Shown one piece after another: positions 366-24,762 of a stretch of DNA of 64,000 nucleotides. The notes under the pieces are model-generated. The model made no database searches, was not told the DNA's origin, and worked only from the letters and a program-made list of their open reading frames with translations. The DNA is taken from sequence record PQ464590.1. One strand, given 5' to 3'. How positions within the stretch are numbered: position 1 is the first letter of the stretch; the number at the start of each line of letters is the position of its first letter. The position numbers and the translations under genes are program-made.

Positions 366-431
366 AGTACTATCCTCATATGATAAAGCCACCAGCAGTG
401 TGCTAGTGGCCTTGTAGTTAATGCTTACAGC

Positions 432-830
432 TTAGAACCCAAAGGCTTTAGCTGCTGCGTTACGCAGAGCAATCTCGTTGAGTACTTTACCCAACTGTTC
501 AGGGTTGATAATGTATTGTTCCATAGCCTCACGTACTGTACCACTAAAGGAACCAAAACCAGTACGGATGATGGTGATCTGGTCCAGACCAGTGATGTGC
601 ATACCTGCAACCTTCTCGGTCACGAACACAGCATCAATGCTGTATTCATTGTTGCCGTCATTGAAGTTCTCAATGCTGACAGTCTGGTTAGCTGCCCATG
701 CCATACACTCGCAGATAGTGCGGGTCGCTCCGGTTGATACGGTGCGGTTGTCCATCGCGTATCGAAGAGCATCAACACCAAAGGTGTTAGCAACGGCAAC
801 AACATCAGAGAAATGATTTAATGTGAACAT
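432..830 (-). CDS. hypothetical early protein
   Basis: AGGAG RBS before ATG 830; promoter TTGCAA-N16-TATAAT at 885-912. Confidence 0.75.
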   Translation of the reverse strand: MFTLNHFSDVVAVANTFGVDALRYAMDNRTVSTGATRTICECMAWAANQTVSIENFNDGNNEYSIDAVFVTEKVAGMHITGLDQITIIRTGFGSFSGTVREAMEQYIINPEQLGKVLNEIALRNAAAKAFGF

Positions 831-924
831 GGTGTATCTCCTGGTAATCTGAGGGAGAACCATTTCCCCCTCTCGATGTAAACAATTATACAGTACTAAA
901 CATTCATTGCAAGTGTTTTTTCAA

Positions 925-1008
925 AGTATTTTTTACTGTTCATTTGTACAGTACTAATCCACCAGCTACACTTCCGCACCCTGTGGGCTTGAGCATTGTT
1001 CTTGCTAT
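925..1008 (-). ncRNA. CCCACAGGGTGC element copy 1
   Basis: Core 976-987; H1 AGC/GCT; promoter TTGACA-17-TATTAT at 1015-1043; ends approximate. Confidence 0.55.
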
Positions 1009-2449
1009 GTACTAATAATAGCAAAGGGGCTGAACGATGTCAACCCCTTATTAATTAAACTAAACAATTGATATTGTTTACAGTACTGCTACTCTCTTCC
1101 TCTTCCCACTCTTTGAAGTACTTCACCGCATCATAGTATGTGTGGTTAACTTCTTTCTTGTGCTCGTCTGATAGTGCTTTATAATCATCGCGAGCGTGCA
1201 GGGAGTGAATAGGGAGCTTACTTGCTGCCAGGTCCGCTGCGTCACGGATGAGGTTCTGTACAACGGTTGGCATGTCTTCAAAATTCATTTCATAATCTCC
1301 GCTTGCAAATCGTCTGCACCTGCTTTATGGTGCTCCAGTACTTCACTACGTTGCCAGTAGTCAAGCGACTTCAGGAGTATACTATCATCCGGTGTCAGTA
1401 CTGTCAAGCCTTTACCGATATTATAAAAGCGTGCTTTGAGTGCATCGAGATCAATCTGAATCATTATGCTATCCTATCGTATTGAATCATTATCTGTTGA
1501 ATGTACAGGGCTAGTGAGCCGTCCTGTATCGATGAGGCCACCAGCAAGGCGGCCAGGATAAAGATCATTCCAGCGGGGATTCTCATTCGATAGTCTCACG
1601 CTGCCACAACCGGCGGACTGAGTCATGGTTAGCCAGTGCAGTGAGAGAGTTTTCGTGAACCATTGCCAGTGCTTCACTGCTGAAGGTTGTCCCTGGCTGA
1701 TAGTATACGTGATTGTTATCGTCAATGAAAACAACATCGAACGGGCGAGCGGCAGAGTCAGACCATTTGCGGGTTTCGAATCGAGCCATTATACTATCTC
1801 CAGGTGAGTGGGAAGAGGTGATTCTCTTCCCTATGCAAATGATTATACAGTACTGTTACGCCTTGTCAAGCTCTGCGTCAGTAAAAACAAAACTTTTAAT
1901 ACGTTCTGTTACTTTGCCAGTACTGTCAAGATCTTCCACCGCTACGAAGTAATCCAGTAGATGATCATGTAACAGGTCGATGTAATCCAGTGCGTCAAGA
2001 TCGTCTTGACATGGTTTGAAGAAGGGCATAATGTGTGCAAACTCTTCCGCGAGATCTTCCATCTGGAATACGTGGGCTACAGTTACGCCGCTATTAGTTA
2101 CTCGATGGGCATGGACACGTGCTGCTAAAGTAATCATGGTATATCCTCGTTAAGCGGGGATAGTTGTTACCCCCTATGCAAATGATTATACAGTACTATC
2201 GATTGTTGTCAATACTTTTGATCACCATCTTGCAATATAACTCTAGGGCTACCAGGATGCTTCCTGTGGTTGTTTTGGTTCTACCCTGGCGAACGACATA
2301 GGCATCACCATCACGTTTTAGAGTGACATCATTATACTGCTTCAATGGTGGATTGTACTGTTTGGACTTACTGGACATTCTAAACCTCTCTATTTTACGA
2401 GATCAATTATTGATCAATCTTTGATGGAAGTCAAGTTATATTTGATCAT

Positions 2450-2508
2450 TTCTTGATCAATATATTTTAGATACATTTGTGCACCCTGTGGGTTAGCTTG
2501 TTTCTATG
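2450..2508 (-). ncRNA. CCCACAGGGTGC element copy 2
   Basis: Core 2481-2492; H1 TAG/CTA; promoter 2515-2543; ends approximate. Confidence 0.5.
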
Positions 2509-2554
2509 GGATCTATAATAGCAAAGGGGCTAACCGAAGTCAACCCCTTGTATA

Positions 2555-2983
2555 TTAAATGTATGAGAAATTTGGCTGTACTTTTTTCATTTCTTCTTTA
2601 GGATCTAGTCCTGATTCTATGATAGCACTGTACCATTGTTTAAACTCGTTAAACTCTGCAAACTTGTTACCTCGTAGGTTGTTACATCTACGGCAAACTG
2701 CTTTGACGTTTACTGCGTCACGTGTACCTCCTAAGCTCCTTAACAAGTCATGCTCTACTGTTAGTTTTTGGGAGAAGTCGAAAGTATATACACTAATCCG
2801 TTTCTTAACTGTACCAGATGCTACAACCGCTTTATAACCGCAGCAGTGGCATCGATTACCATCACGAGCCATTGCATTGATGATAGCTAGACTACCTGAA
2901 CTAATAATAATATCATGCTTAGTCGCGTATAAACGTTCTGACGCTTCATTAAAATCATCACCATCTTTGTACAGTACTTTCAT
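2555..2983 (-). CDS. HNH endonuclease-like protein
   Basis: CHCCG ... TVEHD ... GG ... N ... VCRRCNNLRGNK fits the His-Me finger/HNH pattern. Confidence 0.8.
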   Translation of the reverse strand: MKVLYKDGDDFNEASERLYATKHDIIISSGSLAIINAMARDGNRCHCCGYKAVVASGTVKKRISVYTFDFSQKLTVEHDLLRSLGGTRDAVNVKAVCRRCNNLRGNKFAEFNEFKQWYSAIIESGLDPKEEMKKVQPNFSYI

Positions 2984-3068
2984 CTTTTGAACCTCTTAAT
3001 CATCGTTTAATAGATAATAGCAAAGGGGCTAACCGAAGTCAACCCCTTGTATAAACTTTTCAGTACTG

Positions 3069-3659
3069 TTATCTTAGTAGCTCACGCTTCACGCGGCGGC
3101 GATCTGACAGTCCGTAATGCTGGAAGATGGTACGCTTTGATAATCCAAAGTCTAGCATCTTCACACAACCATTTGCAGACATCCCCAGGTTACGAATATG
3201 CATATCAGTAGCATTGACGTAGTTCAAGTGATAGTCCAGTACTTCAACTGCTTTATAATGCAGGTAAGCCTTACGCTGTGCTTTTGTGAGGTTGTTCCTG
3301 AACCGTACAGCAAAGAGATCATTTGCATACTTGCGGCGACCTGTGAACTGTGTTTCAAGACGTTCCATTACGATAAAGTAATCTTTGTAATGGCAAAGGT
3401 TAACATAGATCTTTGCAAAGTATTTCTTCCACCCTGCGAAATCATAGTCCAGCATATGCCATACGCGGATTTCGTTTTCATTCTGTTCTACGCCAGCATG
3501 ACCCAGGGCGATCTTAATTACTAACTTATCGTTAATCGCGAACACTACTCGACAGGAGCCATTACCAATCTTCTGTAGACCAGCAGCCTCGCAAGCCTTG
3601 ATCATTTCTCGATTGCTCATATCTTCCAGTGATTCTAAGAATTTACGATAGTGTTTCAT
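3069..3659 (-). CDS. protein kinase-like (ePK/APH fold)
   Basis: Gly loop IGNGSCRVVF, VIKIA lysine, MERL hinge, DMHIRN catalytic loop, DFG. Confidence 0.8.
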   Translation of the reverse strand: MKHYRKFLESLEDMSNREMIKACEAAGLQKIGNGSCRVVFAINDKLVIKIALGHAGVEQNENEIRVWHMLDYDFAGWKKYFAKIYVNLCHYKDYFIVMERLETQFTGRRKYANDLFAVRFRNNLTKAQRKAYLHYKAVEVLDYHLNYVNATDMHIRNLGMSANGCVKMLDFGLSKRTIFQHYGLSDRRRVKRELLR

Positions 3660-4029
3660 TTGTTTAGTTCCTTTGCTTAAGTGATGAAAAGAGTATACAG
3701 TACTAATCAGTTTAATGCAATAGCCGAGAGTGCAGAAACTTCATTATAATGTACTTTATTGTTAACAGTACTGTAAACGCGTGCTTTACCATTCTCAATG
3801 ATAACCTTTGCAGTATGATCCTTTGAAACCATGATGATAGTTTCTTCAGTACTGAATCGAGATACAACAAAACCCAATGAAACAATTTCATTTAGAGTTT
3901 TAGCAGAGGACGCCTGGATCAGTGTGTTAGTAGTAGATGGCATTTCGTTATTCCTTAATATTGTGTACTTCGTTTCGATGGGTACATAATACTAAAAGGG
4001 TTGAACCACGTCAACCCTTTATTTTCTCT

Positions 4030-4398
4030 TTATTTGCGTTTACAATCCACCAGCCCCGAAACGATTACTTTTGATTCATCGCGAATAGTAACCGAGCCTT
4101 TGTTTGTGATTTCGTTCACACGAATAGTAGTACTGCCCGTGGCGTCCTCTTCGTGCCAGATCAGATCTTTACCCTGGCGTTGATAATCGTCGTATAATGC
4201 AATCTGCTCCTGTACTGCTGCCCCTGTACTCTCTACAGTCATATTGAGCGTGCAAACCTTCTTTGGCTTGGGTGTGCCAGTACTGAAAGTACTACCATAA
4301 CGATCCGCCATCTGCTGTTCAAAGGATAGTGACGCGTTCGCGTTGAAGGTGATAGCTGCCAGCAGGGACGCGATAGACACAAGTTTATATTTTTGCAT
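4030..4398 (-). CDS. exported hypothetical protein
   Basis: Signal peptide-like N-terminus ending ANA-S. Confidence 0.65.
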   Translation of the reverse strand: MQKYKLVSIASLLAAITFNANASLSFEQQMADRYGSTFSTGTPKPKKVCTLNMTVESTGAAVQEQIALYDDYQRQGKDLIWHEEDATGSTTIRVNEITNKGSVTIRDESKVIVSGLVDCKRK

Positions 4399-5061
4399 GT
4401 TAATCTTCCTGTGAGTTTATACAGTACTGAGCCAGTTGCTCAATTGTTTGGCCTTGCTCGTGTAGTGTTACCAGTTCAAAGGCTATCTGTGAACAATGGT
4501 ACACTACTGCTTTGCTTGCGTCAAGTCGTTTTAATTCCTTGACTACTTCTTGATACACGTTCAAAGTTTCTTACTTGCTCCAACGATGATTAGATTTAAC
4601 AGCATCGATAGTACTGGATGTTTCGCATAACCTGGGCGTAACTTCTTAGCCTCAATGATTGTGCGTGCTGCCTCTTCACGGTTTAGCTTATCCAGTACTA
4701 ATTGTACATTTGTCATCTGTGCTGAACCTTCAGCCATTTTATAACGTTTACCCTGAACAATAACAGAATGATAAGTAACGGTTGACATCTTCGATCCCTT
4801 TAGTTTAAGTTATCGCATTAAAGGATCTCCTTACAATTCGTGTACTTGATTTTATAGTACTGGTGAATATTACGAAATTCATAAATGAATGACGTGATGT
4901 TAGCTTGCAGGTCATCAAAGTCCTGACCTTCTACGATGTGTTGTGACTCTTCGTAATTGTCCTCTCCTGGCTTTAAGCCTTTGAGGGTGATTTGTACTTT
5001 CATTGTTTACCCTCCTTTGCTTCAGTACTGACATCTTAACATATCCACGGCCCATGTCAAC

Positions 5062-5131
5062 TGGTTATTTGTACAGTACTTTTAATTTGTTTATTTCTGT
5101 GCACCCTGTGGGCTGCGGCTTATCTGCCAAT
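5062..5131 (-). ncRNA. CCCACAGGGTGC element copy 3
   Basis: Core 5101-5112; H1 GGC/GCC; promoter 5138-5166; ends approximate. Confidence 0.55.
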
Positions 5132-5190
5132 GACTATATAATAGCAAAAGGGTTAACCGAAGTCAACCCTGTTTATTTGTACAGTACTAA

Positions 5191-5544
5191 TTAATTTACT
5201 TGATTAGTTTCGCCGGTTTTGCGATTGTAGATACACTTTGCTTCACCGAGTTTTTTGGCATCAAAGGCTAACAGTGCTTCTTGTTCGGAGCTTGCCTTGA
5301 TGATTACAGAATCTTCAGCATAACGGGCATCATCGGCTGGTTTATAAGTGATGGCGTATTCTACTACGTCAAAGAAAACATCTACAGCAGCTTGCAAGCG
5401 GTCCAGTTCTTCCGCCAGTTTGCGGAGTTGTTCAGGTGAGATCTTCTCACTGTACAGCGTAGCGTAAACACCTTCAGGTGAACCCACCAGCGTAACATCA
5501 TGACCAGCTAACAGAGCTTCGCGAGTTAAAGGAGATTTAGACAT
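5191..5544 (-). CDS. hypothetical protein
   Basis: Start reassigned to MSKSPL; promoter at ~5588-5616. Confidence 0.65.
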   Translation of the reverse strand: MSKSPLTREALLAGHDVTLVGSPEGVYATLYSEKISPEQLRKLAEELDRLQAAVDVFFDVVEYAITYKPADDARYAEDSVIIKASSEQEALLAFDAKKLGEAKCIYNRKTGETNQVN

Positions 5545-5633
5545 TTTGCAATTCCTTATTAAGTTGGGCTGTCGCACTATTGCCGCCCTATGAAACTAAT
5601 TATACAGTACTGTACTGTAAACGCAAGTACTTT

Positions 5634-5876
5634 TTAACGCTGATTCACAAAAAGATTATACTTCTCATGAGTCATTAGATGTAGATCTTCCCCGTCTATT
5701 ACGATACGATCTGTGCGGGATACTTCCAGTACTGAAAACAGCCCATTAGACAGCTTACGCGGCGTTGTGCGGCCTTCAACGTAATCAGTAGCCATCTGTA
5801 CAGCCTTTTGCAAAAGCTTTGCCTGTGGCTTGCCGTGCACCTTCATACATCGGTTGCCGATCTGGATCTTCTTCAT
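5634..5876 (-). CDS. small basic protein, possible RelE/ParE-like fold
   Basis: 80 aa; RKL..G..SVL.V....RIV.....LMTHEKYN pattern recalled from ParE-like phage proteins. Confidence 0.35.
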   Translation of the reverse strand: MKKIQIGNRCMKVHGKPQAKLLQKAVQMATDYVEGRTTPRKLSNGLFSVLEVSRTDRIVIDGEDLHLMTHEKYNLFVNQR

Positions 5877-5925
5877 GTTTTATGTTCTCTTAAAGGTTTG
5901 GGAGGGTTTCCCCTCCCTGGTTAGA

Positions 5926-6426
5926 TTAGATTGCTACGCGACGTTTGACCAGTACTGGAATCACCGCACCTTTGCGATCTTTGTACTCTTCGTGCACATT
6001 ACGCACGATTGACGCTGGGCGAGGGAGTTCAGCTTGTTTGATGTCCAGTGCTGCGAATGCTTCACGCAGGGCATCAGTGGTGCTTTGTGCTGGAATGATT
6101 ACAGCATCTTCATCCAGTTCTGCAAGTACAGCGTTCAATTCATCAGCATTGTCCAGTTCTGCTACAGTTGCCGTTTCTTTCACAGGCCATGATTTAGGCA
6201 TGTTCAATGCTTCGGTCAAGCCGTCGATCAGCTTCTTATCTTCAGCAGTTGGGACATTCATTTCTACCGCTTTGCACGCCGCGATAACGTCTGACAGTTC
6301 TTTAAACTCAACCGCCCAACGTTCACCTTTAGGAGCATCTTTGCCCATGTCTTTGAAGGTTTCACCTTCTTCACGTGCAACGATTCGGGCAGCTTCACGG
6401 GTAGCAAAGAATTTGATAGTAGACAT
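5926..6426 (-). CDS. hypothetical early protein
   Basis: 166-aa ORF with GAGG RBS and own promoter cassette at ~6470-6522. Confidence 0.8.
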   Translation of the reverse strand: MSTIKFFATREAARIVAREEGETFKDMGKDAPKGERWAVEFKELSDVIAACKAVEMNVPTAEDKKLIDGLTEALNMPKSWPVKETATVAELDNADELNAVLAELDEDAVIIPAQSTTDALREAFAALDIKQAELPRPASIVRNVHEEYKDRKGAVIPVLVKRRVAI

Positions 6427-6519
6427 TTGGTAGTTCCTCTGTTTAGTTAATGTGTCGTCTTGATGAAAGTAATTATGCCAGTACTATCAAACGTTGTCAA
6501 TAGTACTGAGTAATTATTT

Positions 6520-6627
6520 TTAACCGATGTTCAAACACATTACAATTGCCAGTACTGCCACTGCTGCTACCTGGATTCGATTGATCTTGATAGCTTTGAT
6601 TTCGCTGTTTCGAATTGCTTGTTTCAT
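6520..6627 (-). CDS. 35-aa membrane peptide (below ORF-track cutoff)
   Basis: MKQAIRNSEIKAIKINRIQVAAVAVLAIVMCLNIG; GGAG RBS; its stop codon is the start of the next promoter cassette. Confidence 0.55.
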   Translation of the reverse strand: MKQAIRNSEIKAIKINRIQVAAVAVLAIVMCLNIG

Positions 6628-6714
6628 TTTTGTTTACTCCGTTGTGTTGTCTTGATGTAATACAGTATACAGTACTGAATGATGAATGCAAGTACTTTCT
6701 GAAAATAATTTCTC

Positions 6715-6790
6715 TTTTCTTCTGTACTTCTATCCCTTAAACTCAGGACGGATTTGTGCACCCTTGAGGGTTAGACCATTTCACTGGATT
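6715..6790 (-). ncRNA. CCCACAGGGTGC element copy 4 (loop variant CCC-TCAA-GGG)
   Basis: Core 6758-6770; H1 CCA/TGG; promoter TTGACA..CATAAT at ~6797-6828; ends approximate. Confidence 0.5.
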
Positions 6791-6845
6791 GAATACATTA
6801 TGCCAAAAAAGAGGGAGACTGTCAAGCCTCCCATTTGTAAAGATT

Positions 6846-7220
6846 TTACTGGTTTTCGATTTGTTCTTTCTGATAGTCTGTCAGTACTAACATGATTTCG
6901 GCAAACTCCAGTACTTTACCGCTAGACACTTCCACTTCCCCAGGGTAGCATTCAAAGTTTTCGTAGTGATCTTTACAGAAGGAATAAACTTCATCGTTTT
7001 CGATGTCCAGTTCGATCTCTTCATCCAGTTCGAACATCGCCCATTCAGTATGGTAATGACCATCGTTCAGGCGTTCAAGTAAAACGTTGACCATTTCAAC
7101 TTGTACCAGGTTATCACCAACCCACTTACTTACCAGTTGTGGTTCGTCCATTTCCAGTACTGCACAGGATTTACCGTTGTGGATGATTACGTCAGTGATT
7201 TTGAGTTCTGAACCTAACAT
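6846..7220 (-). CDS. acidic hypothetical protein
   Basis: GAGAG RBS before ATG 7220; promoter at 7273-7300. Confidence 0.7.
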   Translation of the reverse strand: MLGSELKITDVIIHNGKSCAVLEMDEPQLVSKWVGDNLVQVEMVNVLLERLNDGHYHTEWAMFELDEEIELDIENDEVYSFCKDHYENFECYPGEVEVSSGKVLEFAEIMLVLTDYQKEQIENQ

Positions 7221-7303
7221 GATATATTCTCTCTTAATAGTGGGGAGAGTCATTCTCTCCCCTATGCCAGCCATTATACAGTACTGGCGTATGGTGTCAA
7301 CAA

Positions 7304-8158
7304 TTATTTGATGTTCAGACCAGTGATGGAACTGTTAGGCACAACCGTAGTAGGAGTGATGCCGTTCCACTTTTCCGCGAATGTTAGCTCAACCAGTGCA
7401 GGGTTATCACGTAGTGCTTTACCTTTAGCATTGATTGCTTCAGCTTCTGCTAGACCTTTAGCACGGATTGCCGCTGCTTCAGCATTTGCCATTTTCTCAC
7501 GCTCATATGCTGCCGCATCTGCACGAGTTTTGGTAATGTCAGCGTCGATCTTTTCCTTTTCCCAGGACTGTTGACGTTTAGTTACTTCAATTTCTTCAGC
7601 CATACGAGATTCAATTTTTTCATCGTAAGCTTTAGAGAAAGAAATATCTTCCACTTCAACGCCGTCAATAATTACAATACCGTCTGGAATAGAATCGCTA
7701 ATAGCCTTGCGTAGTGCTGCAACTAAATCCGCACGTTTCTGAATAGCTGATTCAGCGTTGAATTGACCGAATACAGTTTCCAGGCGTCCCAGTGCTAAAC
7801 GGTCAACTACAGCCGCGTTTAGTCCTGCTACGTCATGATACTTGCGATATACGTCCAGTACTTTACCCGCAGGGATATGATAGGTTACACTAAAGCCCAT
7901 CGTTGCCGCTTGCTGGTCACGGGAATAAGCTGAACGCTCACCATAGGTACGGGTCTGTGACTGTACGCTAATTTCATTCACAGAGTCCACAAAAGGAGCC
8001 TTGAACGCAAAACCAGGTTCAGCAGTGCCAATAACCGCACCGTTACGAGTGATCACGCCACGAGAACCTTCTTCAACTGTATACGCTGAAGAGATACCGA
8101 CCGCAACCAGAATTAGTACTAGGAAGATCCCCAGGATGCCTTTGATAGAAATTTCCAT
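7304..8158 (-). CDS. SPFH/band-7 (prohibitin/HflC-like) membrane protein
   Basis: N-terminal TM helix; YTVEEG.RGVITRNG, GFAFKAPFVDSV, AIEAKM-like segment, Ala/Glu coiled coil, KWNG tail. Confidence 0.9.
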   Translation of the reverse strand: MEISIKGILGIFLVLILVAVGISSAYTVEEGSRGVITRNGAVIGTAEPGFAFKAPFVDSVNEISVQSQTRTYGERSAYSRDQQAATMGFSVTYHIPAGKVLDVYRKYHDVAGLNAAVVDRLALGRLETVFGQFNAESAIQKRADLVAALRKAISDSIPDGIVIIDGVEVEDISFSKAYDEKIESRMAEEIEVTKRQQSWEKEKIDADITKTRADAAAYEREKMANAEAAAIRAKGLAEAEAINAKGKALRDNPALVELTFAEKWNGITPTTVVPNSSITGLNIK

Positions 8159-8324
8159 TCTTTCCCCTTATTAGAGTATAATTGCAATTGCTCATTATGA
8201 GCACGGACAGATTGAATCGCCTCAATAAATTCTATTTGAGACTTTTCTTTCTTAAAATTATTAGTACTGTTATTCAGTACTGAATTAATAGGAGTAATCA
8301 TTTCTTTTATTCCTAAATTAAAAA

Positions 8325-8346
8325 GCTGGTGGGTTAAACCACCAGC
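8325..8346. terminator. intrinsic terminator whose stem is an inverted Chi pair
   Basis: GCTGGTGG-GTTAAA-CCACCAGC, followed by TTTTT on the minus strand, directly after the stop of ORF 8353..8712. Confidence 0.75.
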
Positions 8347-8352
8347 ATTATA

Positions 8353-8712
8353 TTATTTCTTTACCTGAACACAGGAGCCAGTATATTTTCCAATTACTTG
8401 TTTATCTTTATAGATATAAGCAATTGCACCAAGCTTACCTGATTCATTCTTCATAACACCCAATTTATCAATAACCAGGGTTACATCTGAACTATCACCG
8501 ATAGGATAGATAAACATTTCTTGTCCCATCCCGATCAACTGATATTTCGTGTATTGCGTTTCATCAGTGACGGTTTCTACGTCTTGCCCGTTCACGTCGA
8601 TGTTACACTTGTACATCGGCCAGGCTTGATCTTTGATAGCTTCAGTGATAGGATTGTTAGCCAGTACTGAAGTACTAAAGAGCAATGCCCCTAACAAGAA
8701 TGCTCGTTTCAT
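8353..8712 (-). CDS. exported hypothetical protein
   Basis: Signal peptide MKRAFLLGALLFSTSVLA-N. Confidence 0.7.
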   Translation of the reverse strand: MKRAFLLGALLFSTSVLANNPITEAIKDQAWPMYKCNIDVNGQDVETVTDETQYTKYQLIGMGQEMFIYPIGDSSDVTLVIDKLGVMKNESGKLGAIAYIYKDKQVIGKYTGSCVQVKK

Positions 8713-8872
8713 AATGCCTTTACCGCCTTTACGATGTCTTTGACTGAACGGTTAGCATACACCATTACTTCGATCATTGCAATGGCTTTTGGTGAAACAT
8801 TGCCAACTTTATTCAGTACTGCTTCAAATACCTGGTCTTGCTTGCTCATGATAGTACTCTCGTTTAGATTAA

Positions 8873-8948
8873 GGGTCGGGGCTGAGTGGATTCGAACCAC
8901 ACTTATTCAGTACTCGAACTGTTCTACCTGTTGAACTATCTAGCCCCG
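8873..8948 (-). tRNA. non-canonical tRNA-like element (76 nt; possible mimic or pseudogene)
   Basis: D-arm GTTC-AACAGGTA-GAAC; T-arm GTGG-TTCGAAT-CCAC; acceptor CGGGGCT/AGCCCCG; degenerate anticodon arm GTTC-GAGTACT-GAAT; ends ACCC. Confidence 0.7.
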
Positions 8949-11083: not shown

Positions 11084-11383
11084 AATTATTCCTCTACTAC
11101 AGACCAATACCCGCGATATTCAGTCTCATCATCATCGCAGATGTTTTCCATCACTTCATTAAATTCCCCTTCACGGAAATCATCACCAACCATTTCCAGG
11201 ATGTACGCAATTGCATTTTCACGCAAGCCGTCTACATGGTGCGGGAGAACTTCTTCACCGCTAACCTGTTTTACAGTGAGATTGATTTTGATATTCAGAT
11301 CCATTTGGTTTACCTTAATGTTGTTTCAATAAAGCCATTATGCCAGTACTATCAAACATTGTCAATAGTACTGGAGTAAAACT

Positions 11384-11767: not shown

Positions 11768-13124
11768 GATTCTTTCCTTAATAGTGTATGTCGTTTCAAT
11801 AAAGTAATTATGCCAGTACTATCAAACTATGTCAATAGTACTGAGTAATTATTTTAACGGTTGTAAATGTCATGAATCAAAATGTATGATTCACGTTTAA
11901 TGTGTGGATGGTAAGGCAAATAATGCTTATCCAGTACTGACATCAAATCCTGTTCGAGATCATTGATATCATCATAGAATGTTGGGGATACCAGGATATG
12001 CAATATATCAGTATCCACCAGCGTTGCATTGAGTTCCTGCACGTTCTCAATATCCGCATTACGCTTCCAATCTTGCATATTGGAAGTCAGCACGGTACGA
12101 ATGTCATTAGCGTTTAATAAAATATCCATTATTGATTCTCCTGTTTAAGTAAAGTAATTATGCCAGTACTATCAAACTATGTCAATAGTACTGTGATAAT
12201 TATTTTACCTTTTTATCCGTAGTAAAGTACATCGCGATCTGGCGGGTAGTCAGGCACGCCGCACGTAAAGCACGCTCAGTATAGGAGGCATGTTGGTTAA
12301 AGCGATGCATCCCCAGGCCGTTACCGATAGTAATGTTTTCAGTTGCTTTGTATTGTTTCTGATTCATTGCCGTACCCTCTTAAGTGTCGTTAAAGTAATT
12401 ATGCCAGTACTATCAAACTATGTCAATAGTACTGTGATAATTATTTTAATCCAGGATTAACAATTCAAACGTGTAAGTACTGTTTTGAACGCGGTACTCA
12501 TGACGGTTTCCCACTTCGCGGATCTTAATCAAACGCGTATGCGATACCAGGTTTAACGCCTCGCGTACATCCACCAGCGTTTTACAGTCACTGATATCTT
12601 TGTTGAAGTTATCAGAATCACAGACCAGTACTCGACGGGCATTTTTCAGAATCTTGTTAATCATTTTCTACTTCCTCTTAAGAGGGGAGGTTGTCTCCCC
12701 TATGCAAAACATTATACAGTACTGAGATTACTTTGCAAGTACTTTCTATTACTTTTCTGCGGAGTACTTGTAAAAGATATCAGTATTCAAAGCATCCAGT
12801 ACAAAGTTTTTAAAATCCATTTCCGCAAGGCTGTAACGCTCTGTGCAGAACTGTACTGGCGTATGCTTCCCGATTTGCTTCAGTACTTCCCAGGTGATAC
12901 CAGTCTCAGTCTCAGGCGTTTCACGGCGAATGATACAAGCGTAGTAAGAGATCAGTTTACCTTCCTGACCATAAGAGAACTCTTTAACTGTAGTAGATGT
13001 TTCTGTGTTTTCGAATAATTCCATTTTGTTACCCTCTTTAAGTTAGGCTTTGTTTGCCTGATGTAATACAGTATACAGTACTGAATAATTAATGCAAGTA
13101 CTTTCTCAAAATATTTTCTCTTTC

Positions 13125-13204
13125 TTTTTCCTGTACATATGTACAGTACTTTTATTTTACTTACTTCTCCGCACCCTGTGGGCTTGAGCATTGTTCTTGC
13201 TATG
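13125..13204 (-). ncRNA. CCCACAGGGTGC element copy 6
   Basis: Core 13171-13182; 5' part identical to copy 1; promoter ~13210-13240; ends approximate. Confidence 0.55.
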
Positions 13205-13555
13205 TGAGTATTATGCCAAAAAAGAGGGAGACTGTCAAGCCTCCCTTTTGTAAAGATTTATGCTTTTGGAATGCGTTTCGGCATCGGTGGAGTAGACCAG
13301 TTATTGTACTGGCGTTCTGTGATTTCGCCACCTTTGCAAAGAGAGTCGATATAGTTCGACCAGGATTCATGGAAAGCTGGCTGGTCATTCTTCCAGCGTG
13401 GATCTTGCTGTACCATCGCAATCCACATTTCTTTGTGAGCTTGTACTACAGTTGCCTTATTCATAATCTTCTCTCTTAAGTTCGGAGGGAGAACCGTTTC
13501 CCCCTCTCGATTTAAAACATTATACAGTACTGAATACTATTTGCAAGCTTTTCTT

Positions 13556-14044
13556 TTACTCTTCTTCTTGTACCTCTTCAACCTGGATAGGATGTAAACG
13601 TCCATCTTCTTTCAATAACTTCCAGTACTGTTTACCCTCGTTAGGATTACCCGCAGCCAACGGTGATCCATACATCTTGTGATAGTGGAATTGATCTGTT
13701 AGTTCGTAGTCGTCGTGATACTCGCGACCGTCAAACACATACACCGGGCAAGGATAATAATTATCAATGTTCGCCGCGATGATATCAGCCATACCAAACA
13801 ACACTTCAACTGTGGTAACAGTCTCGCGTTTTTCACGTCCCCAGTTCAAAGCATGAAACATGCAATCCTGTAACTGTGGGCGTAGAATACTGATCACGCC
13901 GCCACTTGTAACAGCCTGTGCCGCCGAATAGTTATTGTAATGATCCACCAGGATTTTACCAGCCAGATCCCCATCATTCACCAGGTCAACGTAACGGACA
14001 GAACCATCTAAGTTAATGAAAGCGATAAGGGCTTGAGTGCTCAT
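13556..14044 (-). CDS. hypothetical protein
   Basis: AGGA RBS before MSTQAL; cassette promoter TTGACT..TAGAAT upstream. Confidence 0.75.
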   Translation of the reverse strand: MSTQALIAFINLDGSVRYVDLVNDGDLAGKILVDHYNNYSAAQAVTSGGVISILRPQLQDCMFHALNWGREKRETVTTVEVLFGMADIIAANIDNYYPCPVYVFDGREYHDDYELTDQFHYHKMYGSPLAAGNPNEGKQYWKLLKEDGRLHPIQVEEVQEEE

Positions 14045-14764
14045 GATTGTTTCCTTAATGTTGTTTCGTTTCGATAAAGTACATTCTACAGTACTATCAC
14101 ACAAAGTCAATAGTACTGGATGAATATATTTTACCAGCCCGCATTACAACGACGTGACGCGTACACTTCGCCCTGACGAATTACCATGCGGTGAGATCCT
14201 ACCACCTGTGCCACACGGGTTTTAAAATCGTGCTCAGTACTAAAATCTTTTGAATCCACTTCGTCGATGGTTTCAACTTTACCCGCGAATTTCACATTGA
14301 TATAACGTTTCATATTTTGTTTCCTTAAGTGTTGTTTCAATAAAGTACATTCTACAGTACTATCACAGAAAGTCAATAGTACTGGATGAATATATTTTAT
14401 TTGTGTTCTAACATGTAATGATAAGTAATGTATTTTGATTCATCACCAATCAAATCAATATACGCCTGGAGCGTCAAACGATCTGGAAGCGGGGGAAGTT
14501 CTAAACATTCCTGTACTGTAACCATTTCGTCAAACGTGTACTTAACACGCCCCGCACGATTCCATTGATTCAGTAATTCCGCAGGGTGTAAACCAGGGAT
14601 CATGATGCATACAGAATCAATTCGAACGTTATCACCGTTCACAGATACAAACTCAGAGTGATACTTAAAAGCTTTAGTGAATGCATGTTTCATTTTTATT
14701 TCCTCGCTTTGTTTCGATATAGAGAAGTATACAGTACTGAATAATATTTGCAAGCATTATTTTA

Positions 14765-14848
14765 CCTGTTCTTTTATACAGTACTATTTCAGTACTAATA
14801 CTACAGATACACTTCCGCACCCTGTGGGCTTGGCCTTTGTTCCGGCTT
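14765..14848 (-). ncRNA. CCCACAGGGTGC element copy 7
   Basis: Core 14817-14828; H1 GCC/GGC; promoter 14855-14884; ends approximate. Confidence 0.55.
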
Positions 14849-15835
14849 GATAGTACTATAGCAAAAAAACTGGGAGGCTGTCAACCCCCCATTTGTAAAT
14901 TATTTGCTTTCCAGGTAAACGCCGTATTCGTTCGTTTCACCTTCCCACACGCGGTTGATCGTGTACGCGTCCGAATAGATGTTAATCTCATTCGTGGTAT
15001 AGTCTACCGCTATTTCGTTAATGTCGAAAGATCCGTGGGAAGTGGTTACAGTACTGGCATTAGGGAAGATTGTAACGTTCTCCACCTTACTAAGTGCACG
15101 CCCAAATTCATCACGGATAACGATAGTCATGCTCATTGTTCTTTCCTCTTAAGTGGGGGAAGATGTTTCCCCCTTGAGTACTAATATACAGTACTGGAAA
15201 ACTATTGCAAGTACTTTGTGCAATTATTTTTTAGTACTATCGCCACGCCGCCCCTGTGCCATAGCCTGTGCCTGTTCTACACTAAAACGCTCATACAGGC
15301 TTTTCTCTTCAGGGGTTAGTGTGGCGGCTTCCCGCATCATACGCCCCGCACGATCCCAGCTACGCGGCGTAGGGATACCCTGGATATCTTCGGGGGCAAT
15401 GTCGGGCACGCCTGGAACGTCTACAAACTCGATCCCCAGCTTTTCGGCTTGTTCACGGAATACACTAGATAATAGTTTCATCTTTAAAGCTCCTGTATCG
15501 CTCTGTGAGCGGTTTTAATGGTTAATCAGTACCGTACAACGCTTTAACGTCAAAAGCCCCGCTAATCGGCTTACAGGGCTTATCAATGCGATAGTGCACG
15601 CCACGATCCGATACGAAATAACCCTCAATATCTAAGTACATGAAAAACTCTTTCAGCACTCCACCGATTACACAAACCATCCACCCACTAGCACGCTTTT
15701 TGTGTAGACCATCGTTAACGAGAATCTTTCTCATTACGGTGCCAGGTGTTGTGATTTCGCTTAAGTTTCGCATTTCGATCTCCTGAATGATATTAGGATA
15801 GTACTGTACACGTATACAGTACTATCATTAACCAC

Positions 15836-16279
15836 TTAGGCAGTGTAAGCCGGATTAGGCACACGGCGGGTAATGAGGCGTACATCGTGCGGAACGTTCT
15901 CACGGTAGCACTTCAATTGTGCTTTTGCCTCTTTCATGGTTTCCTCGCTGGTGGCATCATCCCAACCATAGCCGCAATTCTCCTGGATCACATACTCATT
16001 GATCCATTTGGTTACACGCTTAGGCTTCATACAAGCCGCCACAATCGCATCCAGGCTGTTCTGTAACATTTCACCGTAGTACTCCCAAAACGCCGGATAG
16101 TTTGCTTTGATAAGCTTGAACTGGATTTTAATCTCATCCAGGTTCGCCTGTGTCAGTACTAAACCGCTTTCCTTCACTTCTTTCACTGACATTGCTTTCT
16201 TGCTTACACGCCAGTTGTAGCCAGAAGCATAACCAGGACGATTCATGATCAGGTGAGTATCTAAGAATAATTTAGCCAT
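15836..16279 (-). CDS. hypothetical protein
   Basis: 147-aa ORF with AGGA RBS. Confidence 0.7.
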   Translation of the reverse strand: MAKLFLDTHLIMNRPGYASGYNWRVSKKAMSVKEVKESGLVLTQANLDEIKIQFKLIKANYPAFWEYYGEMLQNSLDAIVAACMKPKRVTKWINEYVIQENCGYGWDDATSEETMKEAKAQLKCYRENVPHDVRLITRRVPNPAYTA

Positions 16280-16390
16280 TTTGTAATTCCTTAATTAAGT
16301 ACTGTCTCGATTTGATAAAGCTCATTATACAGTACTGGATAACTATTTCAACTGTTAATTTATCCAGTACTGTCGTAATGTACTCTATGC

Positions 16391-17017
16391 TTATGCGTTC
16401 ACGCCGTTTTTAGCTTCCAGGGTAGCGGCTGCCGCCTCTTTGTCTACCGCGTACTTGGTAATGAATGCCGCACGGTCATCGCCAAACTCAGCAGATACAC
16501 GCTCTTTCCAAATGTTCGGCATGTTGCCAGTAGTAGGCATGTCGTATGCTTCGCCGTTGAAATCAATCGCTACGCGGTTGAACGTGAACGACTTTTCAGA
16601 TTTAGCAGGGTACTTTTTAGCCATCGCCGTGTCTACCATACCCTGTGCCACTTCCAGATCCAGGCCCATCTTTTCAACGATGTCTTTCAACATGTTTTCC
16701 GCTTCCTGTTTACGGGCTGCCAGTTCTGCCGCGTTCTCAGCTTCACGCTGTGCTTTACGGGTCGCCAGGGTGTCATTCAGTTTTGCCAGGCGTGCGATTT
16801 TGTTCGCTTCTTTCTGCTCTGCGGCTTCTTTCTGGCGGGTCTTAACCTGCTCTTTCGCGGACTTCACAGCCAGGGAGAAATTCAGCCCCATCTTCTGTAC
16901 CAGTGCAACCGCATCATCACCACCAGCAGCGATAGCCAGGTCAGTCAGTTTAGTTGCCAGTACTTCCACATTACCAGATTCGATAGCAGCTTTCAGAGTT
17001 ACGATTGATTTAGACAT
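16391..17017 (-). CDS. divergent H-NS/StpA-like protein
   Basis: Manual alignment: LAKL..coiled coil..GLD..PAK, then IDFNGEAYDMPTTGNMP..K..G..F versus H-NS [19 protein letters not shown]..F. Confidence 0.6.
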   Translation of the reverse strand: MSKSIVTLKAAIESGNVEVLATKLTDLAIAAGGDDAVALVQKMGLNFSLAVKSAKEQVKTRQKEAAEQKEANKIARLAKLNDTLATRKAQREAENAAELAARKQEAENMLKDIVEKMGLDLEVAQGMVDTAMAKKYPAKSEKSFTFNRVAIDFNGEAYDMPTTGNMPNIWKERVSAEFGDDRAAFITKYAVDKEAAAATLEAKNGVNA

Positions 17018-17430
17018 TTTTAAATCCTCAGTTAGTAAGTTAGGTTATTTGTTTGCTTCGGGGTTAGTATTACATTTTGCTAACCATCCGTCAAGTACTA
17101 TTTTAAATCTTTTTTTCATCTTTCGGTCGCCTGGTTTTCGTTTGACTTACAGGCTGTCTACTTAGTGTTGCCCCGTTCGATGTAATACATATTACCAGAG
17201 TAGAAACTATTTGCAAGTACTTTCTACAAAATAAATGAATCTTTTTACTTTCCTTATACTTTACCAGTACTTAAGATGCAACGCCACCAGCAGCCTTGTA
17301 ACGTGTTTAAATCAGTACAGAACCCTATGACATACCCCAGGGAGTAAAAGCCCGTACAACGCGTTACAGGCCATTTAAATTGATTGAAAATAGTTGTTGA
17401 CTTCATATGCCAGTACTGTATAATGACCCC

Positions 17431-17524
17431 ATAGCTTAGACAAATAGCTCAGCCCACGGGGTGCGGAATTGTGTCTAATGAATATAGTACTGTACAAATA
17501 AACAGGGGAAGCCGTAGCCTCCCC
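17431..17524 (+). ncRNA. CCCACAGGGTGC element copy 8 (stand-alone small RNA candidate)
   Basis: Promoter 17397-17424; H1 AGCT/AGCT; core variant 17453-17464; terminator hairpin 17505-17524 followed by a T-run. Confidence 0.7.
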
Positions 17525-18315
17525 ATTGTTTTTATACTCGTTTTAATGCCAGGGCAAAATCCCCTACTTCGGCCACCGATCCCGTAAAGCGTTGCATATA
17601 ATCCACTACCGTGCTGTTTTCCATCGGGGCAATGATTAGATTATCCTGATCACGTGCGGCGATGTCAAAGAAAACAACCTGCGGATCATAGTTACCGACT
17701 TTCGCTGCGGCTTCAGCCATATCCGCACAAATACGCTGTAAGTCACTTAAACGCATAACAGTACTCATGATACTTCTCCTTAATAATGGGGGAAGTTGTT
17801 TCCCCCTATGCAAAACATTATACAGTACTGAATGAGTTATGCAAGTACTTTTTTTACAAGCAAGGGGCGTAAACTTTACCAGTGTTTACCCAGACGTTGA
17901 ATTTCGGCATCTTATCCCATTCATCCATCGTTAACCCCAGGGCGTGCAGGTAGTCAGTACTGAATACGCCGCCACGTGGTTCAATGCGATAATCTTTATG
18001 TACTGCGTAAAGCTTCCCTTTGTACTCATACGCCAGGGTTAAATCACTGGTATTCATCGCATGAATCAAAGTGTCTAACATCGCGTGCATTGCGAATTGT
18101 TCACGCTTAAGAGGCTGTGAACGTGCGACGGCACGCCAGGCTGCAATAGTACTGTTAACAGTTTCACGGGACTGATTATTCATATCAGCACGGAAGTTAA
18201 TCAGGTCATTCATTGCGTTAATCATAGACATAATATTTTCTCTCTTAAGTTAGTAGGGGAAGTTGTTTCCCCTATGCAAAACATTATACAGTACTGAATG
18301 AGTTATGCAAGTACT

Positions 18316-18732
18316 TTATGCATTTTCTTTTTTATGTTCTGCGGCTTTAATCCAGGCCATTTCCGCATTGTCGGAATGACTAACCCAATGACCCTCAAAG
18401 CGTACTACCCAAGATGGCTCGCTTTCACCGTGAAACTCGCGTTGTACAGTGTAACGCTTATCGGCTTTTGCAGTACTGATATATTCACCGAACAATTGTT
18501 TAACCAGGCGTTTCCATTGCGTGCGAGCGTCTGTGAGATTCTCTTCTGATACCCACTCAATACGGCCTACAGAATCATAGTTGTGTGCTCTTACATGCCA
18601 GCAACCATGCTCAAGCCACAAATCAATGCGGATCTCTTCCCCTGATACTTTTGATTCTACGCGTTGAATATAACCACACAGGAAAGAATAAGCAGTTAAA
18701 CCCTGGCCATTTCGAAATTTAGTATTGAACAT
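18316..18732 (-). CDS. hypothetical early protein
   Basis: 138-aa ORF with AGGA RBS, leader hairpin and promoter. Confidence 0.75.
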   Translation of the reverse strand: MFNTKFRNGQGLTAYSFLCGYIQRVESKVSGEEIRIDLWLEHGCWHVRAHNYDSVGRIEWVSEENLTDARTQWKRLVKQLFGEYISTAKADKRYTVQREFHGESEPSWVVRFEGHWVSHSDNAEMAWIKAAEHKKENA

Positions 18733-18803
18733 TGTTTTGTTTCCTTAAGTAGTGGGGCGAACCATTCCGCCCCGTTGAGATACACTATACAGTACTGAAT
18801 ATT

Positions 18804-19187
18804 TTATGCAAGCTCTTTCGACAAAATATTTTCAAAGTACTTGATAAGATCTTCCAGGAGTTTAACACGGATCACACCCGTTTCCCCTTTGTACAGGTTA
18901 GGAGAACGCCCGTATAATTCACCTGCTAACGCGTTACTGTCTACTAACTGCCGCTCTACTGGATAGTCTATATTAAGACCCATTTCAACAAATACAGGCT
19001 CAAGGGCATGATAATCTACTCCGTCCCGTGGTGGAGTGAACGCGTATACATGCCAGCAGATACCTGCTGCCTCTTCCAGGTTGAAAGCTATGCCGTGTGC
19101 ACGGGTATATGTATCATCTGTCTCTACACAGGTTTTAATGCTTTTCAGTACTGGTAAAATATGGTTAACCTGATTTAATGTAAACAT
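18804..19187 (-). CDS. hypothetical protein, GIC/YPxE paralog family
   Basis: Shares GIC..YPVE..G..R..LL..LI.Y with ORFs at 52014, 52387 and 59361. Confidence 0.7.
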   Translation of the reverse strand: MFTLNQVNHILPVLKSIKTCVETDDTYTRAHGIAFNLEEAAGICWHVYAFTPPRDGVDYHALEPVFVEMGLNIDYPVERQLVDSNALAGELYGRSPNLYKGETGVIRVKLLEDLIKYFENILSKELA

Positions 19188-19324
19188 GTTGTTTCCTTAA
19201 TAGTGTTGTTTTGCTTCAGTCCCTATATAGTACAGTACTGACAAAAGAATGCAAGTACTATTTTCATAAAAAAGATTTTGCATTTAGGTATTGACTCCAC
19301 CCACAGAACCTGTATAATTAGTAC

Positions 19325-19400
19325 ATAAGCCGGACACAAGGCACTAACCCACAGGGTGCGGAAAACCGTCCAGTACTGTAAATGATTATCATTCTCATTC
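19325..19400 (+). ncRNA. CCCACAGGGTGC element copy 9
   Basis: Promoter 19291-19318; core 19348-19359; first ~47 nt identical to copy 5. Confidence 0.6.
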
Positions 19401-19447
19401 GCCGGGTGTACCTCCGCACCCTGTGGGCTACGTCATTTCGCTGACTT
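19380..19447 (-). ncRNA. CCCACAGGGTGC element copy 10 (convergent with copy 9)
   Basis: Core 19416-19427; H1 GTCA/TGAC; promoter TTGCAA..TACAAT at ~19454-19482. Confidence 0.6.
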
Positions 19448-19864
19448 GTACTAATTGTACAGTACTGAAAAATTATTGCAAGCTTTATTTTCAGGGAGGG
19501 CGAACCCTCCCAGAGTCCCTACGCCGCGTTGTGAGGCGTTATTACAATCAGTGGTATATAGTCCCGTAATTCTAGCGTATCGCCGTCTGTGAGGGCTTCC
19601 AGGGCTTCCACGGTGCAAGCCTCGCACGGGTAGTACATGAGAACATCACCCATAGTCATGATAGTTCCATTAACTTTAAAGTACTGTTTAGAATATTTCT
19701 GTCGCATGATAATCATTCTCATTAACCAGGTTCGACTATCTCCCCTGTTCTGAAATTCATTATACAGTACTGAATTGTTATTACCAGCATATTTTTCACA
19801 TTCTTTTTGAATCTTTTTGCGTTTAGGGTATTGACATAAAATCGCAGTACTGTATAATTACTAC

Positions 19865-19940
19865 ATAGACGCGAGATGCGGGAACCCCAGGGGGTGCGGG
19901 AATATAACCATAAAGCGAAATGATTCTCATTCTCATTTAG
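19865..19940 (+). ncRNA. CCCACAGGGTGC element copy 11
   Basis: Promoter 19831-19858; H1 CGC/GCG; core variant 19885-19897. Confidence 0.55.
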
Positions 19941-19996
19941 CTTTTAACGGACGGACTCCCGCACCCTGTGGGCTTGTCCTGTTACGCCAGGATTGA
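19920..19996 (-). ncRNA. CCCACAGGGTGC element copy 12 (convergent with copy 11)
   Basis: Core 19961-19972; H1 TCCTG/CAGGA; promoter TTGCAA-17-TATAAT at 20002-20030. Confidence 0.6.
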
Positions 19997-21198
19997 AACT
20001 AATTATACAGTACTGAATTATTTTTTGCAAGTACTAAAAATAGTAGTAGACAATTCATTTCTATGTGATAAGATGATTCCAGATTTAAAACAATTCGATT
20101 CCAGATACTGCCAGGGAAAAAACAACCCTGACGCGGTAGGCTAGCCGCACCCCGCGATCTAGCAAAGGTAAATGCGAATCATTCCTATTTGCAAATGAGA
20201 ATCAATCTCATATGCGAACGAGTATCATTTGCAAATGCAGATGATAACCATTCTCATCTGGCTCAAAATTCGAGTCGGCTTTAGCTCGCCCTAAAGAAAG
20301 CCACCAGCAACCCTTCGTGTATCCATAGTACTGCCATAGTACTGCCATAATTCTTCAATTAATCTCAGTACTGAATGCTTAGCCAAACAGTACTGTTTAT
20401 GTTTTCCGATGGAGGTCAGAAATCTTATTAAGTGGTGAATCCAATTCACTATTCACAGTACTATAGGGATAGGTGGTCCCATGTTAATAGTACTACTATA
20501 GTGAACTGCACTTACTTAAACAACATTCGGGCAGTCATGAAGTTCACCGTGTTCATGAAAGTAGACAGTCCCTAGGCTTAGCAGTACTGGAATGATGGAA
20601 GGCACACACTTCAGTACTGAAAGCTTTCTTTTACTCTTTGACGATGTACACCAGGATATAACGTAGGAGCTTAGCTGGTGTGCCTATCTCCCTCGTAGGA
20701 CGCTATTATCACATATACGCGTGTCCACGTCAAGCTTTATTTTCAATAATGCAGTACTGAATTTTTGGGCCAGGCATGATCGAGATTTAGGATGGAGCAC
20801 CTTCCAGATTTTTGCTGGAGGGTCATTGACTTTTTTAAATTTTCAACTTTTTGCTGGAGGGTCATCGGGAATTTCCCTGAAGCCTGGTTCCCTCCTTTCT
20901 CCCCACCTCATTGTACACCCCTCTTGTAGTACTGTCAAGAAATACTTCTTGTACTCTGACGTTACAAGAAGATATAGTTGCAGGGGTGGTACAGTACTGA
21001 ATAGTACTTAAGAATGCTTTGCCGTGTTTACCTGTACTTCTGTACATATGTAATTATACCCATACATATAAAAATGTACAGTACTGTACGTATATACAAA
21101 TGTGCCTTTTACGGGGTGTTGAATCCTTTCGATAACGTTTTGTCCAGGGGGAATTTACCCCCTGTGTAAGATTACGTTCTCTTTCAGGAACTAACACC

Positions 21199-24750: not shown

Positions 24751-24762
24751 GGAGAGAGAGAA

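Follow-up and report, generated by a model that had tools for sequence, protein, structure and literature searches.

Clusters of Chi, the octamer 5′-GCTGGTGG-3′, near DNA ends are known from two groups of phages. Phages P1, P7 and D6 contain a Chi-dense terminal redundancy (Subramaniam & Smith, bioRxiv 10.1101/2021.07.08.451572); P1 carries 50 sites, most of them in or near terminally repeated DNA and at a density above that of the host chromosome, and RecBCD/RecA recombination between the terminal copies after injection has been proposed. The lambdoid phage LLS (23 Chi) and approximately 60 similar phages across Enterobacterales hosts show a strong Chi excess that is clustered at one DNA end and mostly oriented for RecBCD entering there (Genome Res 2025, PMC12315714). 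Here we describe a related arrangement in nt 1–64,000 (64 kb, hereafter the window) of Erwinia phage Hallingskeid (accession no. PQ464590.1; 366,158 bp), a RaK2-like "group 2.2" jumbo myovirus of Erwinia aphidicola (Enterobacterales). Chi was found to be concentrated in the first 20,974 bp, which are predicted to be one copy of a direct terminal repeat (DTR), and the sites probably steer host RecBCD into recombination at the phage ends.

Hallingskeid resembles P1 in the number, location and density of its Chi sites and in the recombination between terminal copies that can be proposed for it. P1 is temperate, packages by headful from pac, has a permuted and variable redundancy and can circularise by Cre-lox, whereas Hallingskeid is a virulent 366-kb myovirus with a predicted exact 21-kb DTR, and its Chi cluster ends exactly at the repeat edges. 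LLS, with which Hallingskeid shares the Chi excess and clustering described above (11 of the 13 DTR sites also have the corresponding orientation, a ratio that coding-strand composition would give by itself), differs from it in having cos ends and no terminal repeat; furthermore, phages of the LLS class are without a recombination module or anti-RecBCD function of their own, and their growth was experimentally shown to be enhanced by RecBCD. Hallingskeid is a virulent phage whose replication and recombination genes are of the T4 type; its annotation includes a UvsX-like recombinase, a UvsY-like mediator, an SbcC/SbcD-like nuclease, a DprA-like protein and endonuclease VII. It may work like the LLS class but is not a member of it, since a recombination module is present. 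Enterobacterial chromosomes likewise show over-representation of the same octamer and its preference for the G-rich strand (leading or coding); at only 42% GC, the DTR contains about three times the Chi density of the E. coli chromosome (0.62/kb or 1 per 1.6 kb vs. 0.22/kb or 1 per 4.6 kb), the remainder of the Hallingskeid genome having 0.12/kb. Exact direct terminal repeats are also found in T5-, T7- and SPO1-type phages, and Chi density in T3, T5 and T7 is at or above that of E. coli. The terminal repeats of T5 and SPO1 carry early host-takeover genes with strong host promoters, and T7 relies on the RecBCD inhibitor Gp5.9. A Chi array limited to the repeat was not described for phages of these types in the literature consulted, which yielded no account of clustered Chi for the terminal repeats of jumbo phages or for direct terminal repeats in general.

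An exact search of both strands of the window detected 18 Chi sites, 11 on the minus strand (reading CCACCAGC on the plus strand) and seven on the plus strand (Table 1), compared to 0.88 expected by chance (100 dinucleotide shuffles, maximum 4). All eleven plus-strand positions of CCACCAGC listed in an earlier note on this DNA were exact, and its expectation of below 1 site per 20 kb was right. It was also correct in placing no further co-oriented site in 20.4–64 kb, as the next minus-strand Chi of the genome is at 88,340, after a gap of 68 kb. The seven plus-strand sites had been overlooked, and two of these (8325 and 15947) are within the block 1–20,974, which therefore contains 13 Chi sites, 11 co-oriented and two opposite, instead of the 11 reported. 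Of the minus-strand sites, the deposited annotation places just two (389 and 8339) between genes, instead of at least four as had been claimed; sites 959, 1538, 17284 and 20301 are in annotated open reading frames (ORFs) of 40–52 amino acids (aa) that are possibly not real genes. Five of the block sites are read in the frame nnG-CTG-GTG-Gnn and two as Ala-Gly-Gly (one of them in the 52-aa ORF), and the site at 15947 is antisense. The entire record contains 54 Chi sites, 19 on the plus strand and 35 on the minus strand, with 41 outside the DTR. The cluster at the left end greatly exceeds chance, with 0.525 minus-strand sites/kb in 1–20,974 compared to 0.070/kb in the other 345 kb (7.5-fold, binomial P = 2.5e-6). 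The final 28.7 kb of the record (337.5–366.2 kb) are free of Chi in both orientations.

The excess is specific to the exact octamer. Genome-wide, the 54 sites compare with 4.0 expected at order 0, 10.8 by an order-3 and 16.9 by an order-5 Markov model; Chi ranked 2 of 65,536 octamers at order 5 and was among the top three words at order 6. The commonest one-mismatch neighbour of Chi was present in 24 copies in the genome, and Chi outnumbers every such neighbour at least 2.25-fold. Within the DTR, all 24 one-mismatch neighbours summed to five copies, and octamers of the same composition reached a maximum of three each. When synonymous codons were shuffled within each gene (300 shuffles, proteins and codon usage kept), 1.4 sense Chi sites were expected in DTR genes, where seven were observed, and outside the DTR 25 sense and 15 antisense sites were observed vs. 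8.8 and 5.2 expected; none of the 300 shuffles reached the observed counts. Intergenic DNA of the DTR contains three or four sites, with approximately 0.05 expected from composition. An artefact of composition or codon usage was thus rejected by Markov orders 0–6, one-mismatch neighbours, same-composition octamers and synonymous shuffles alike. The possibility that Chi belongs to a larger repeated sequence or motif was also rejected: the flanks of the 54 sites are heterogeneous, with only T at position −1 reaching 50%, and as they share nothing, the unit is the octamer itself.

The extent of the DTR was predicted by comparison with relatives whose DTRs were mapped by PhageTerm or coverage. The PhageTerm-mapped DTRs of Klebsiella phages fENko-Kae01 (19,736 bp) and Muenster (20,030 bp) and the DTR of E. 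coli phage vB_Ec-M-J (21,525 bp) were shown to be syntenic counterparts of window positions 1–21 kb with a shared gene order. The repeat edge of fENko-Kae01 and Muenster, ...G(G)CTA/AGCAT.AC...CTTTACTAAG (the slash marking the edge), coincides exactly with window coordinate 1, and the terminus ...GAGAAGATA/TAGCGGAAGGGG of fENko-Kae01 and Munch matches ...AAGAAGATA (20,974)/TAGTTGCAGGGG in the window. Because both edges align nucleotide-for-nucleotide to the mapped termini of relatives, it is very probable that the genome physically ends at coordinate 1, as the earlier note had proposed. The authors of the Hallingskeid genome reported having reoriented the assemblies to "their correct start sites," and mentioned neither a terminal repeat nor Chi. 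GC content is 42.4% in 1–20,974 and falls to approximately 38% beyond both edges. The Hallingskeid DTR is thus predicted to be 20,974 bp in size and to have been collapsed to a single copy in the record, and with a DTR at both ends the packaged DNA would be approximately 387 kb and not 366 kb.

Chi sites were then counted in nine other genomes, either of metagenomic origin or from phages that infect Escherichia, Salmonella, Klebsiella or Yersinia, as co-oriented + opposite sites inside the DTR or its homolog and as sites in the flanks. The counts were 12 + 2 for fENko-Kae01 (flanks: 4 in 28 kb), 7 + 1 for Muenster (0 in 6 kb), 8 + 1 for RaK2 (1 in 29 kb), 11 + 2 for Munch (0 in 19.6 kb), 9 + 2 for vB_Ec-M-J (0 in 26.5 kb), 6 + 0 in the 13.5 kb covered for Yersinia phage fHe-Yen9-04 (3 in 31.5 kb) and 9 + 2 in 10.8 kb for each of two IMG/VR contigs (1 and 0 in 9.5 kb), while all sites of a third IMG/VR contig (6 + 0) were within one half and the other half contained none. 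The cluster is confined to the DTR in these relatives, and the positions of the sites mostly differ between lineages. Almost no DNA of the relatives could be aligned to the window; for close IMG/VR relatives only about 570 nt were alignable (78%), so that a site-by-site comparison of conservation was infeasible, and a second protein query for close IMG/VR relatives returned nothing. One site, at 389, is positionally conserved and forms an arm of a conserved hairpin (388–410). Judged from these genomes, it is the density of Chi, and not the individual sites, that is maintained across lineages. When four lineages were pooled, a modest gradient was seen, with 17 of 39 co-oriented sites in the DTR quarter at the coordinate-1 terminus (P = 0.009; Kolmogorov–Smirnov P = 0.08).

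The Pseudomonas jumbo phage PA5oct (accession no. MK797984) served as a negative control. Like Hallingskeid, it has a long terminal repeat of small co-oriented genes (annotated as 39,080 bp, supported by double coverage) with a GC content of 36.5%, which is above that of the flank, and its terminase is related to that of Hallingskeid (43% identity). In contrast to Hallingskeid, GCTGGTGG is absent from both strands of the 50 kb of PA5oct examined, terminal repeat included. The Pseudomonas octamer GCTGGCGC was considered as a host-matched equivalent of Chi in PA5oct and rejected, as it was not enriched. An analogous repeat without Chi indicates that the octamer tracks enteric hosts and not the phage family or the composition of the repeat.

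These results are best explained, with a probability of roughly 0.65 in our estimate, by a DTR that carries selected host Chi sites by which RecBCD is steered into recombination at the phage ends. Chi would have been selected into the Hallingskeid genome, most strongly in the repeat and most of all in the approximately 5 kb at the coordinate-1 terminus, and virion DNA would bear the DTR of approximately 21 kb at both ends, with small genes on strong host sigma-70-type promoters. Host RecBCD would load on the free ends of injected or replicating linear DNA, unwind and degrade it and, after a few hundred bp to a few kb, encounter a Chi in the correct orientation, in redundant DNA. The enzyme would turn recombinogenic and load RecA on a 3′ tail homologous to the second DTR copy; loss of DNA would be kept within the repeat, and DTR-by-DTR recombination would be promoted, giving circles, concatemers or priming of recombination-dependent replication. 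Joining of the DTRs would precede the phage UvsX/UvsY/gp46-47-type proteins and would need no RecBCD inhibitor. If, as an illustration, each Chi is assumed to be recognised in 20–40% of encounters, RecBCD would pass all eleven sites in 0.4–9% of entries. The mechanism has already been proposed for the P1 and LLS groups, and we infer that it is also the best-supported reading here.

That Chi is used, as had been suggested in the earlier note, is supported by the octamer-specific excess that survived the codon null, by its recurrence in relatives and by its absence from PA5oct; the enteric-type host predicted at the same time agrees with E. aphidicola. Chi was found active in all enteric bacteria tested so far, and the RecBCD of Erwinia presumably reads GCTGGTGG as well. 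The presence of the same octamer in phages of four other enteric genera and its absence from a Pseudomonas relative would lend indirect support to recognition by the host. No anti-defence match to dbAPIS was reported for Hallingskeid in the source paper, no label of a Gam-type inhibitor or end protector is present in the deposited annotation, and no known RecBCD inhibitor or end protector was detected with PHROGs among 20 of the larger DTR proteins.

Several observations weigh against recombination at the ends as the role of the array. RecBCD reads Chi from its 3′ side, so the eleven minus-strand sites face an enzyme entering at coordinate 1; to this extent the orientation claimed in the earlier note holds for 11 of the 13 sites. 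The other two are opposite, however, and the codon-shuffle null predicts a strand ratio of 5.7:1 in the DTR, compared to 11:2 observed. The bias is thus no stronger than coding-strand composition would give, and orientation is weak evidence for the end at which RecBCD enters. Chi also changes strand with the genes at 22.7–33.7 kb, where four sites (26.8–33.3 kb) are on the plus strand in plus-strand genes. With the repeat at both ends, RecBCD coming from the other terminus would find just two sites in the correct orientation, at approximately 5.0 kb (15947) and 12.6 kb (8325). The record contains no duplicate copy of its ends, and the presence of a DTR in Hallingskeid is deduced from homology to relatives. 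The phage encodes UvsX-, UvsY-, SbcCD- and DprA-like proteins, whereas the known Chi-rich lambdoid phages are without recombination modules. A search of the literature on Chi in Erwinia gave nothing relevant, and "protection from destruction" by Chi was called a myth by Subramaniam and Smith, as Chi-less phages grow on recBCD+ hosts. The mirror-image bias that the earlier note had suggested checking for at the other genome end is absent from the record, with zero Chi in 337.5–366.2 kb; a repeat present at both ends would place the same array, facing inward, at the other genome end as well, without a mirror image.

Alternatively, Chi may have been selected genome-wide and in both orientations so that RecBCD can repair any double-strand break, be it from restriction or CRISPR cuts, collapsed forks or packaging cuts. 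The DTR would then merely be the part most strongly or earliest exposed, and orientation would be incidental to gene direction. Such a general role is in agreement with the 41 sites outside the DTR, with the change of strand at 22.7–33.7 kb, with fold enrichments that are alike on sense and antisense strands (5x and 8x in the DTR, 2.8x and 2.9x in the rest) and with DTR hairpins pairing Chi and anti-Chi, which offer both orientations. We nevertheless regard it as unlikely, because in all genomes examined an abrupt change in Chi density coincides exactly with the edges of the DTR, the sites become denser toward one terminus and the 28.7 kb just outside coordinate 1 are without any Chi, while a generic repair benefit does not predict restriction to the terminal repeat. 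A further reading is that end-proximal Chi curbs degradation by RecBCD, so that fewer fragments of the injected end become available as CRISPR spacers, and that a phage without an inhibitor gives no trigger to systems guarding RecBCD. RecBCD, Chi, CRISPR spacer acquisition and retrons are mentioned as linked in the literature. The first Chi, conserved and 389 bp from the terminus, and the lack of a detected RecBCD inhibitor (20 DTR proteins; dbAPIS in the source paper) fit such a role, and the sequence does not separate it from one in recombination; it leaves 11–14 sites unexplained where one or two would suffice, however, and is considered very improbable.

An absence of any RecBCD function has already been largely refuted and is given almost no credence. 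Chi would in that case be a by-product of composition, of host-like codons in early genes or of DNA acquired from the host, or else a motif of the phage itself, for instance a terminator stem or protein binding site. Compared to the remaining genome, the DTR is indeed richer in GC and makes more use of the codons CTG, GGC and GCG, and three of its Chi sites are in hairpin stems. The excess was not reached by Markov models, one-mismatch neighbours, same-composition octamers or codon shuffles, however, and the flanks of the sites are heterogeneous; moreover, the DTR proteins belong to phage families and not to host genes, Chi is denser in the DTR (0.62/kb) than on the E. coli chromosome, the PA5oct DTR of similar GC has zero Chi, and the motif is exactly the Chi of the host clade.

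The notion of phages enlisting end-proximal host Chi is extended by these findings from temperate P1 and lambdoids lacking recombination genes to a large family of virulent jumbo phages with recombinases of their own, which cuts against the rule that Chi-rich phages are those without recombination genes. The abrupt onset of Chi together with the GC step provides a marker of the terminal repeat in the RaK2-like family that can be read from sequence, and a second 21-kb repeat copy is predicted to be missing from the Hallingskeid record. Dependence on RecBCD, if true, would have consequences for host range, for defence and counter-defence and for the way in which linear genomes of 350–390 kb begin to replicate. 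As a tentative extension, which we consider possible though somewhat doubtful, the approximately 20-kb repeat of RaK2-like enteric jumbo phages may be a Chi-armoured sacrificial recombination cassette by which RecBCD is pacified rather than inhibited, with the array partly in terminator hairpins, and the RecA filament made by RecBCD may join the repeats and start recombination-dependent replication. This would imply an early dependence on host RecBCD and RecA despite UvsX/UvsY, as well as escape from defences that sense inhibition of RecBCD.

Table 1. Chi sites and predicted terminal features in the window (strand of Chi in the record: −, reading CCACCAGC on the plus strand; +, reading GCTGGTGG)
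Feature	Position	Strand	Remarks
Predicted DTR	1..20974		Homology to mapped DTRs; approximately 65 small minus-strand genes, 13 Chi; single copy in record
Conserved left-terminus sequence (AGCATTACCCGCCTTTACTAAG...)	1..84	+	75–82% identity to DTR edge of fENko-Kae01, Muenster and Yersinia phage fHe-Yen9-04
Terminator-like hairpin GCCACUAGC-N5-GCUGGUGGC	388..410	−	Conserved by alignment; −19.7 kcal/mol, z = −5.65
Chi 1	389..396	−	Intergenic, 389 bp from terminus; position conserved in five genomes
Chi 2	959..966	−	Annotated 42-aa ORF, probably leader or non-coding
Chi 3	1538..1545	−	Annotated 40-aa ORF
Chi 4	4047..4054	−	Sense, frame G-CTG-GTG-G, close to 3′ end of 122-aa gene
Chi 5	5484..5491	−	Sense, Leu-Val frame
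Intergenic hairpin GCTGGTGG-N6-CCACCAGC, then T-run	8325..8346	both	−15.3 and −17.1 kcal/mol; one Chi per orientation (8325 plus, 8339 minus)
Chi	12015..12022	−	Sense, Leu-Val frame
Chi	12571..12578	−	Sense, Leu-Val frame
Chi, opposite orientation	15947..15954	+	Antisense in 147-aa gene
Chi	16920..16927	−	Sense, Ala-Gly-Gly frame
Chi	17284..17291	−	Annotated 50-aa ORF
Chi, last of array	20301..20308	−	Annotated 52-aa ORF, poorly coding zone near terminus
Conserved right-terminus region ending ...AAGAAGATA	20746..20974	+	Aligns to fENko-Kae01/Munch terminus
Chi outside DTR	26786..26793	+	Sense, plus-strand RCC1-like paralog
Chi outside DTR	30549..30556	+	Sense, plus-strand RCC1-like paralog
Chi outside DTR	32711..32718	+	Sense, plus-strand RCC1-like paralog
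Chi outside DTR	33308..33315	+	Sense, plus-strand virion protein gene
Chi outside DTR	44132..44139	+	Antisense in minus-strand gene

Three Chi sites of the DTR are part of hairpin stems. In the hairpin at 388–410 the first Chi forms one arm, and the second arm reads GCTAGTGG on the plus strand. The hairpin at 8325–8346 contains a site of each orientation and looks like a bidirectional terminator. A CCACCAGC-N4-GCTGGTGG hairpin was also found in some relatives, approximately 500 bp from the far repeat terminus, i.e., the one not at coordinate 1. The site at 15947 is the first that can be read by RecBCD entering at the 20,974 terminus.

The right-terminus region contains two copies of TTTTTGCTGGAGGGTCAT (20811–20828 and 20850–20867), each carrying the one-mismatch Chi variant GCTGGAGG, which faces the predicted right terminus. 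These two copies and the short repeats GATTTAGGATGGAGCAC in 20,746–20,974 are conserved in fENko-Kae01 and Munch, and both types of repeat are candidates for terminase recognition. Eleven ORFs of 29–67 aa are annotated on both strands in 19,200–21,200; they are probably not genes, since the terminus region to which this stretch corresponds is conserved and non-coding in the relatives.

The minus strand of the DTR was found to carry at least 35 near-consensus sigma-70-type promoters, many of them fused to terminator hairpins. Such terminator-promoter composites are present in window positions 1–20,000 (e.g., 13225–13246, 6813–6832 and 14871–14891), with the −35 sequence TTGACA in the loop or stem of the terminator hairpin and an extended −10 (TG-n-CATAAT) 17 nt further on. 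Dozens of intergenic DTR elements of 45–95 nt are 80–93% conserved compared to fENko-Kae01 and Muenster, whereas the intervening genes have diverged. The 20 proteins scanned against PHROGs, from among the larger ones of the DTR, fell into families without an assigned function, with a single lipoprotein family as the exception. The DTR looks like an immediate-early module read by host RNA polymerase. In every relative, its GC content is 3.5–7 points above that of the flanks. DTR codons are more host-like than those of the rest (CTG, 27% vs. 15% of Leu; GGC, 27% vs. 10% of Gly), which fits early genes that are translated before phage tRNAs exist.

Paralog arrays lie on both sides of the repeat. 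Approximately 2.6 kb past it, on the opposite strand, a tandem array of eight RCC1-like paralogs of approximately 380 aa, labeled "regulator of chromosome condensation," occupies 23,542–33,003 (+); the same array also flanks the repeat in fENko-Kae01 (ENKO_515c–528c). At the other end of the record (349,000–366,112), long tandem arrays of paralogs of approximately 170–200 aa, followed by paralogs of approximately 110 aa, take up the final 17 kb up to the repeat and are included in the Chi-free final 28.7 kb. Similar arrays of paralogs of approximately 190 aa flank the repeat in fENko-Kae01 and Munch.

Other sequence biases were detected in the genome. A search of the literature on an excess of the palindrome AGTACT found none, and in the 366-kb genome it is present 1,313 times vs. 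approximately 118 expected (11x), with 327 copies in the window. Its extended form CAGTACTG is by far the most over-represented octamer (412 copies in the genome, 110 in the window); about 87% of these are in coding DNA, and AGTACT occurs in each of the three reading frames, with no strong positional tie to gene starts. The palindrome is 11–19x over-represented in all enteric-host relatives (3–6.5 per kb) and depleted in PA5oct (4 vs. 17 expected). The hexamer palindromes CCGCGG, CCCGGG, CCATGG, CAGCTG, AGGCCT and AGCGCT are all missing from the 366 kb, with 21–50 expected for each, which looks like strong avoidance of restriction sites.

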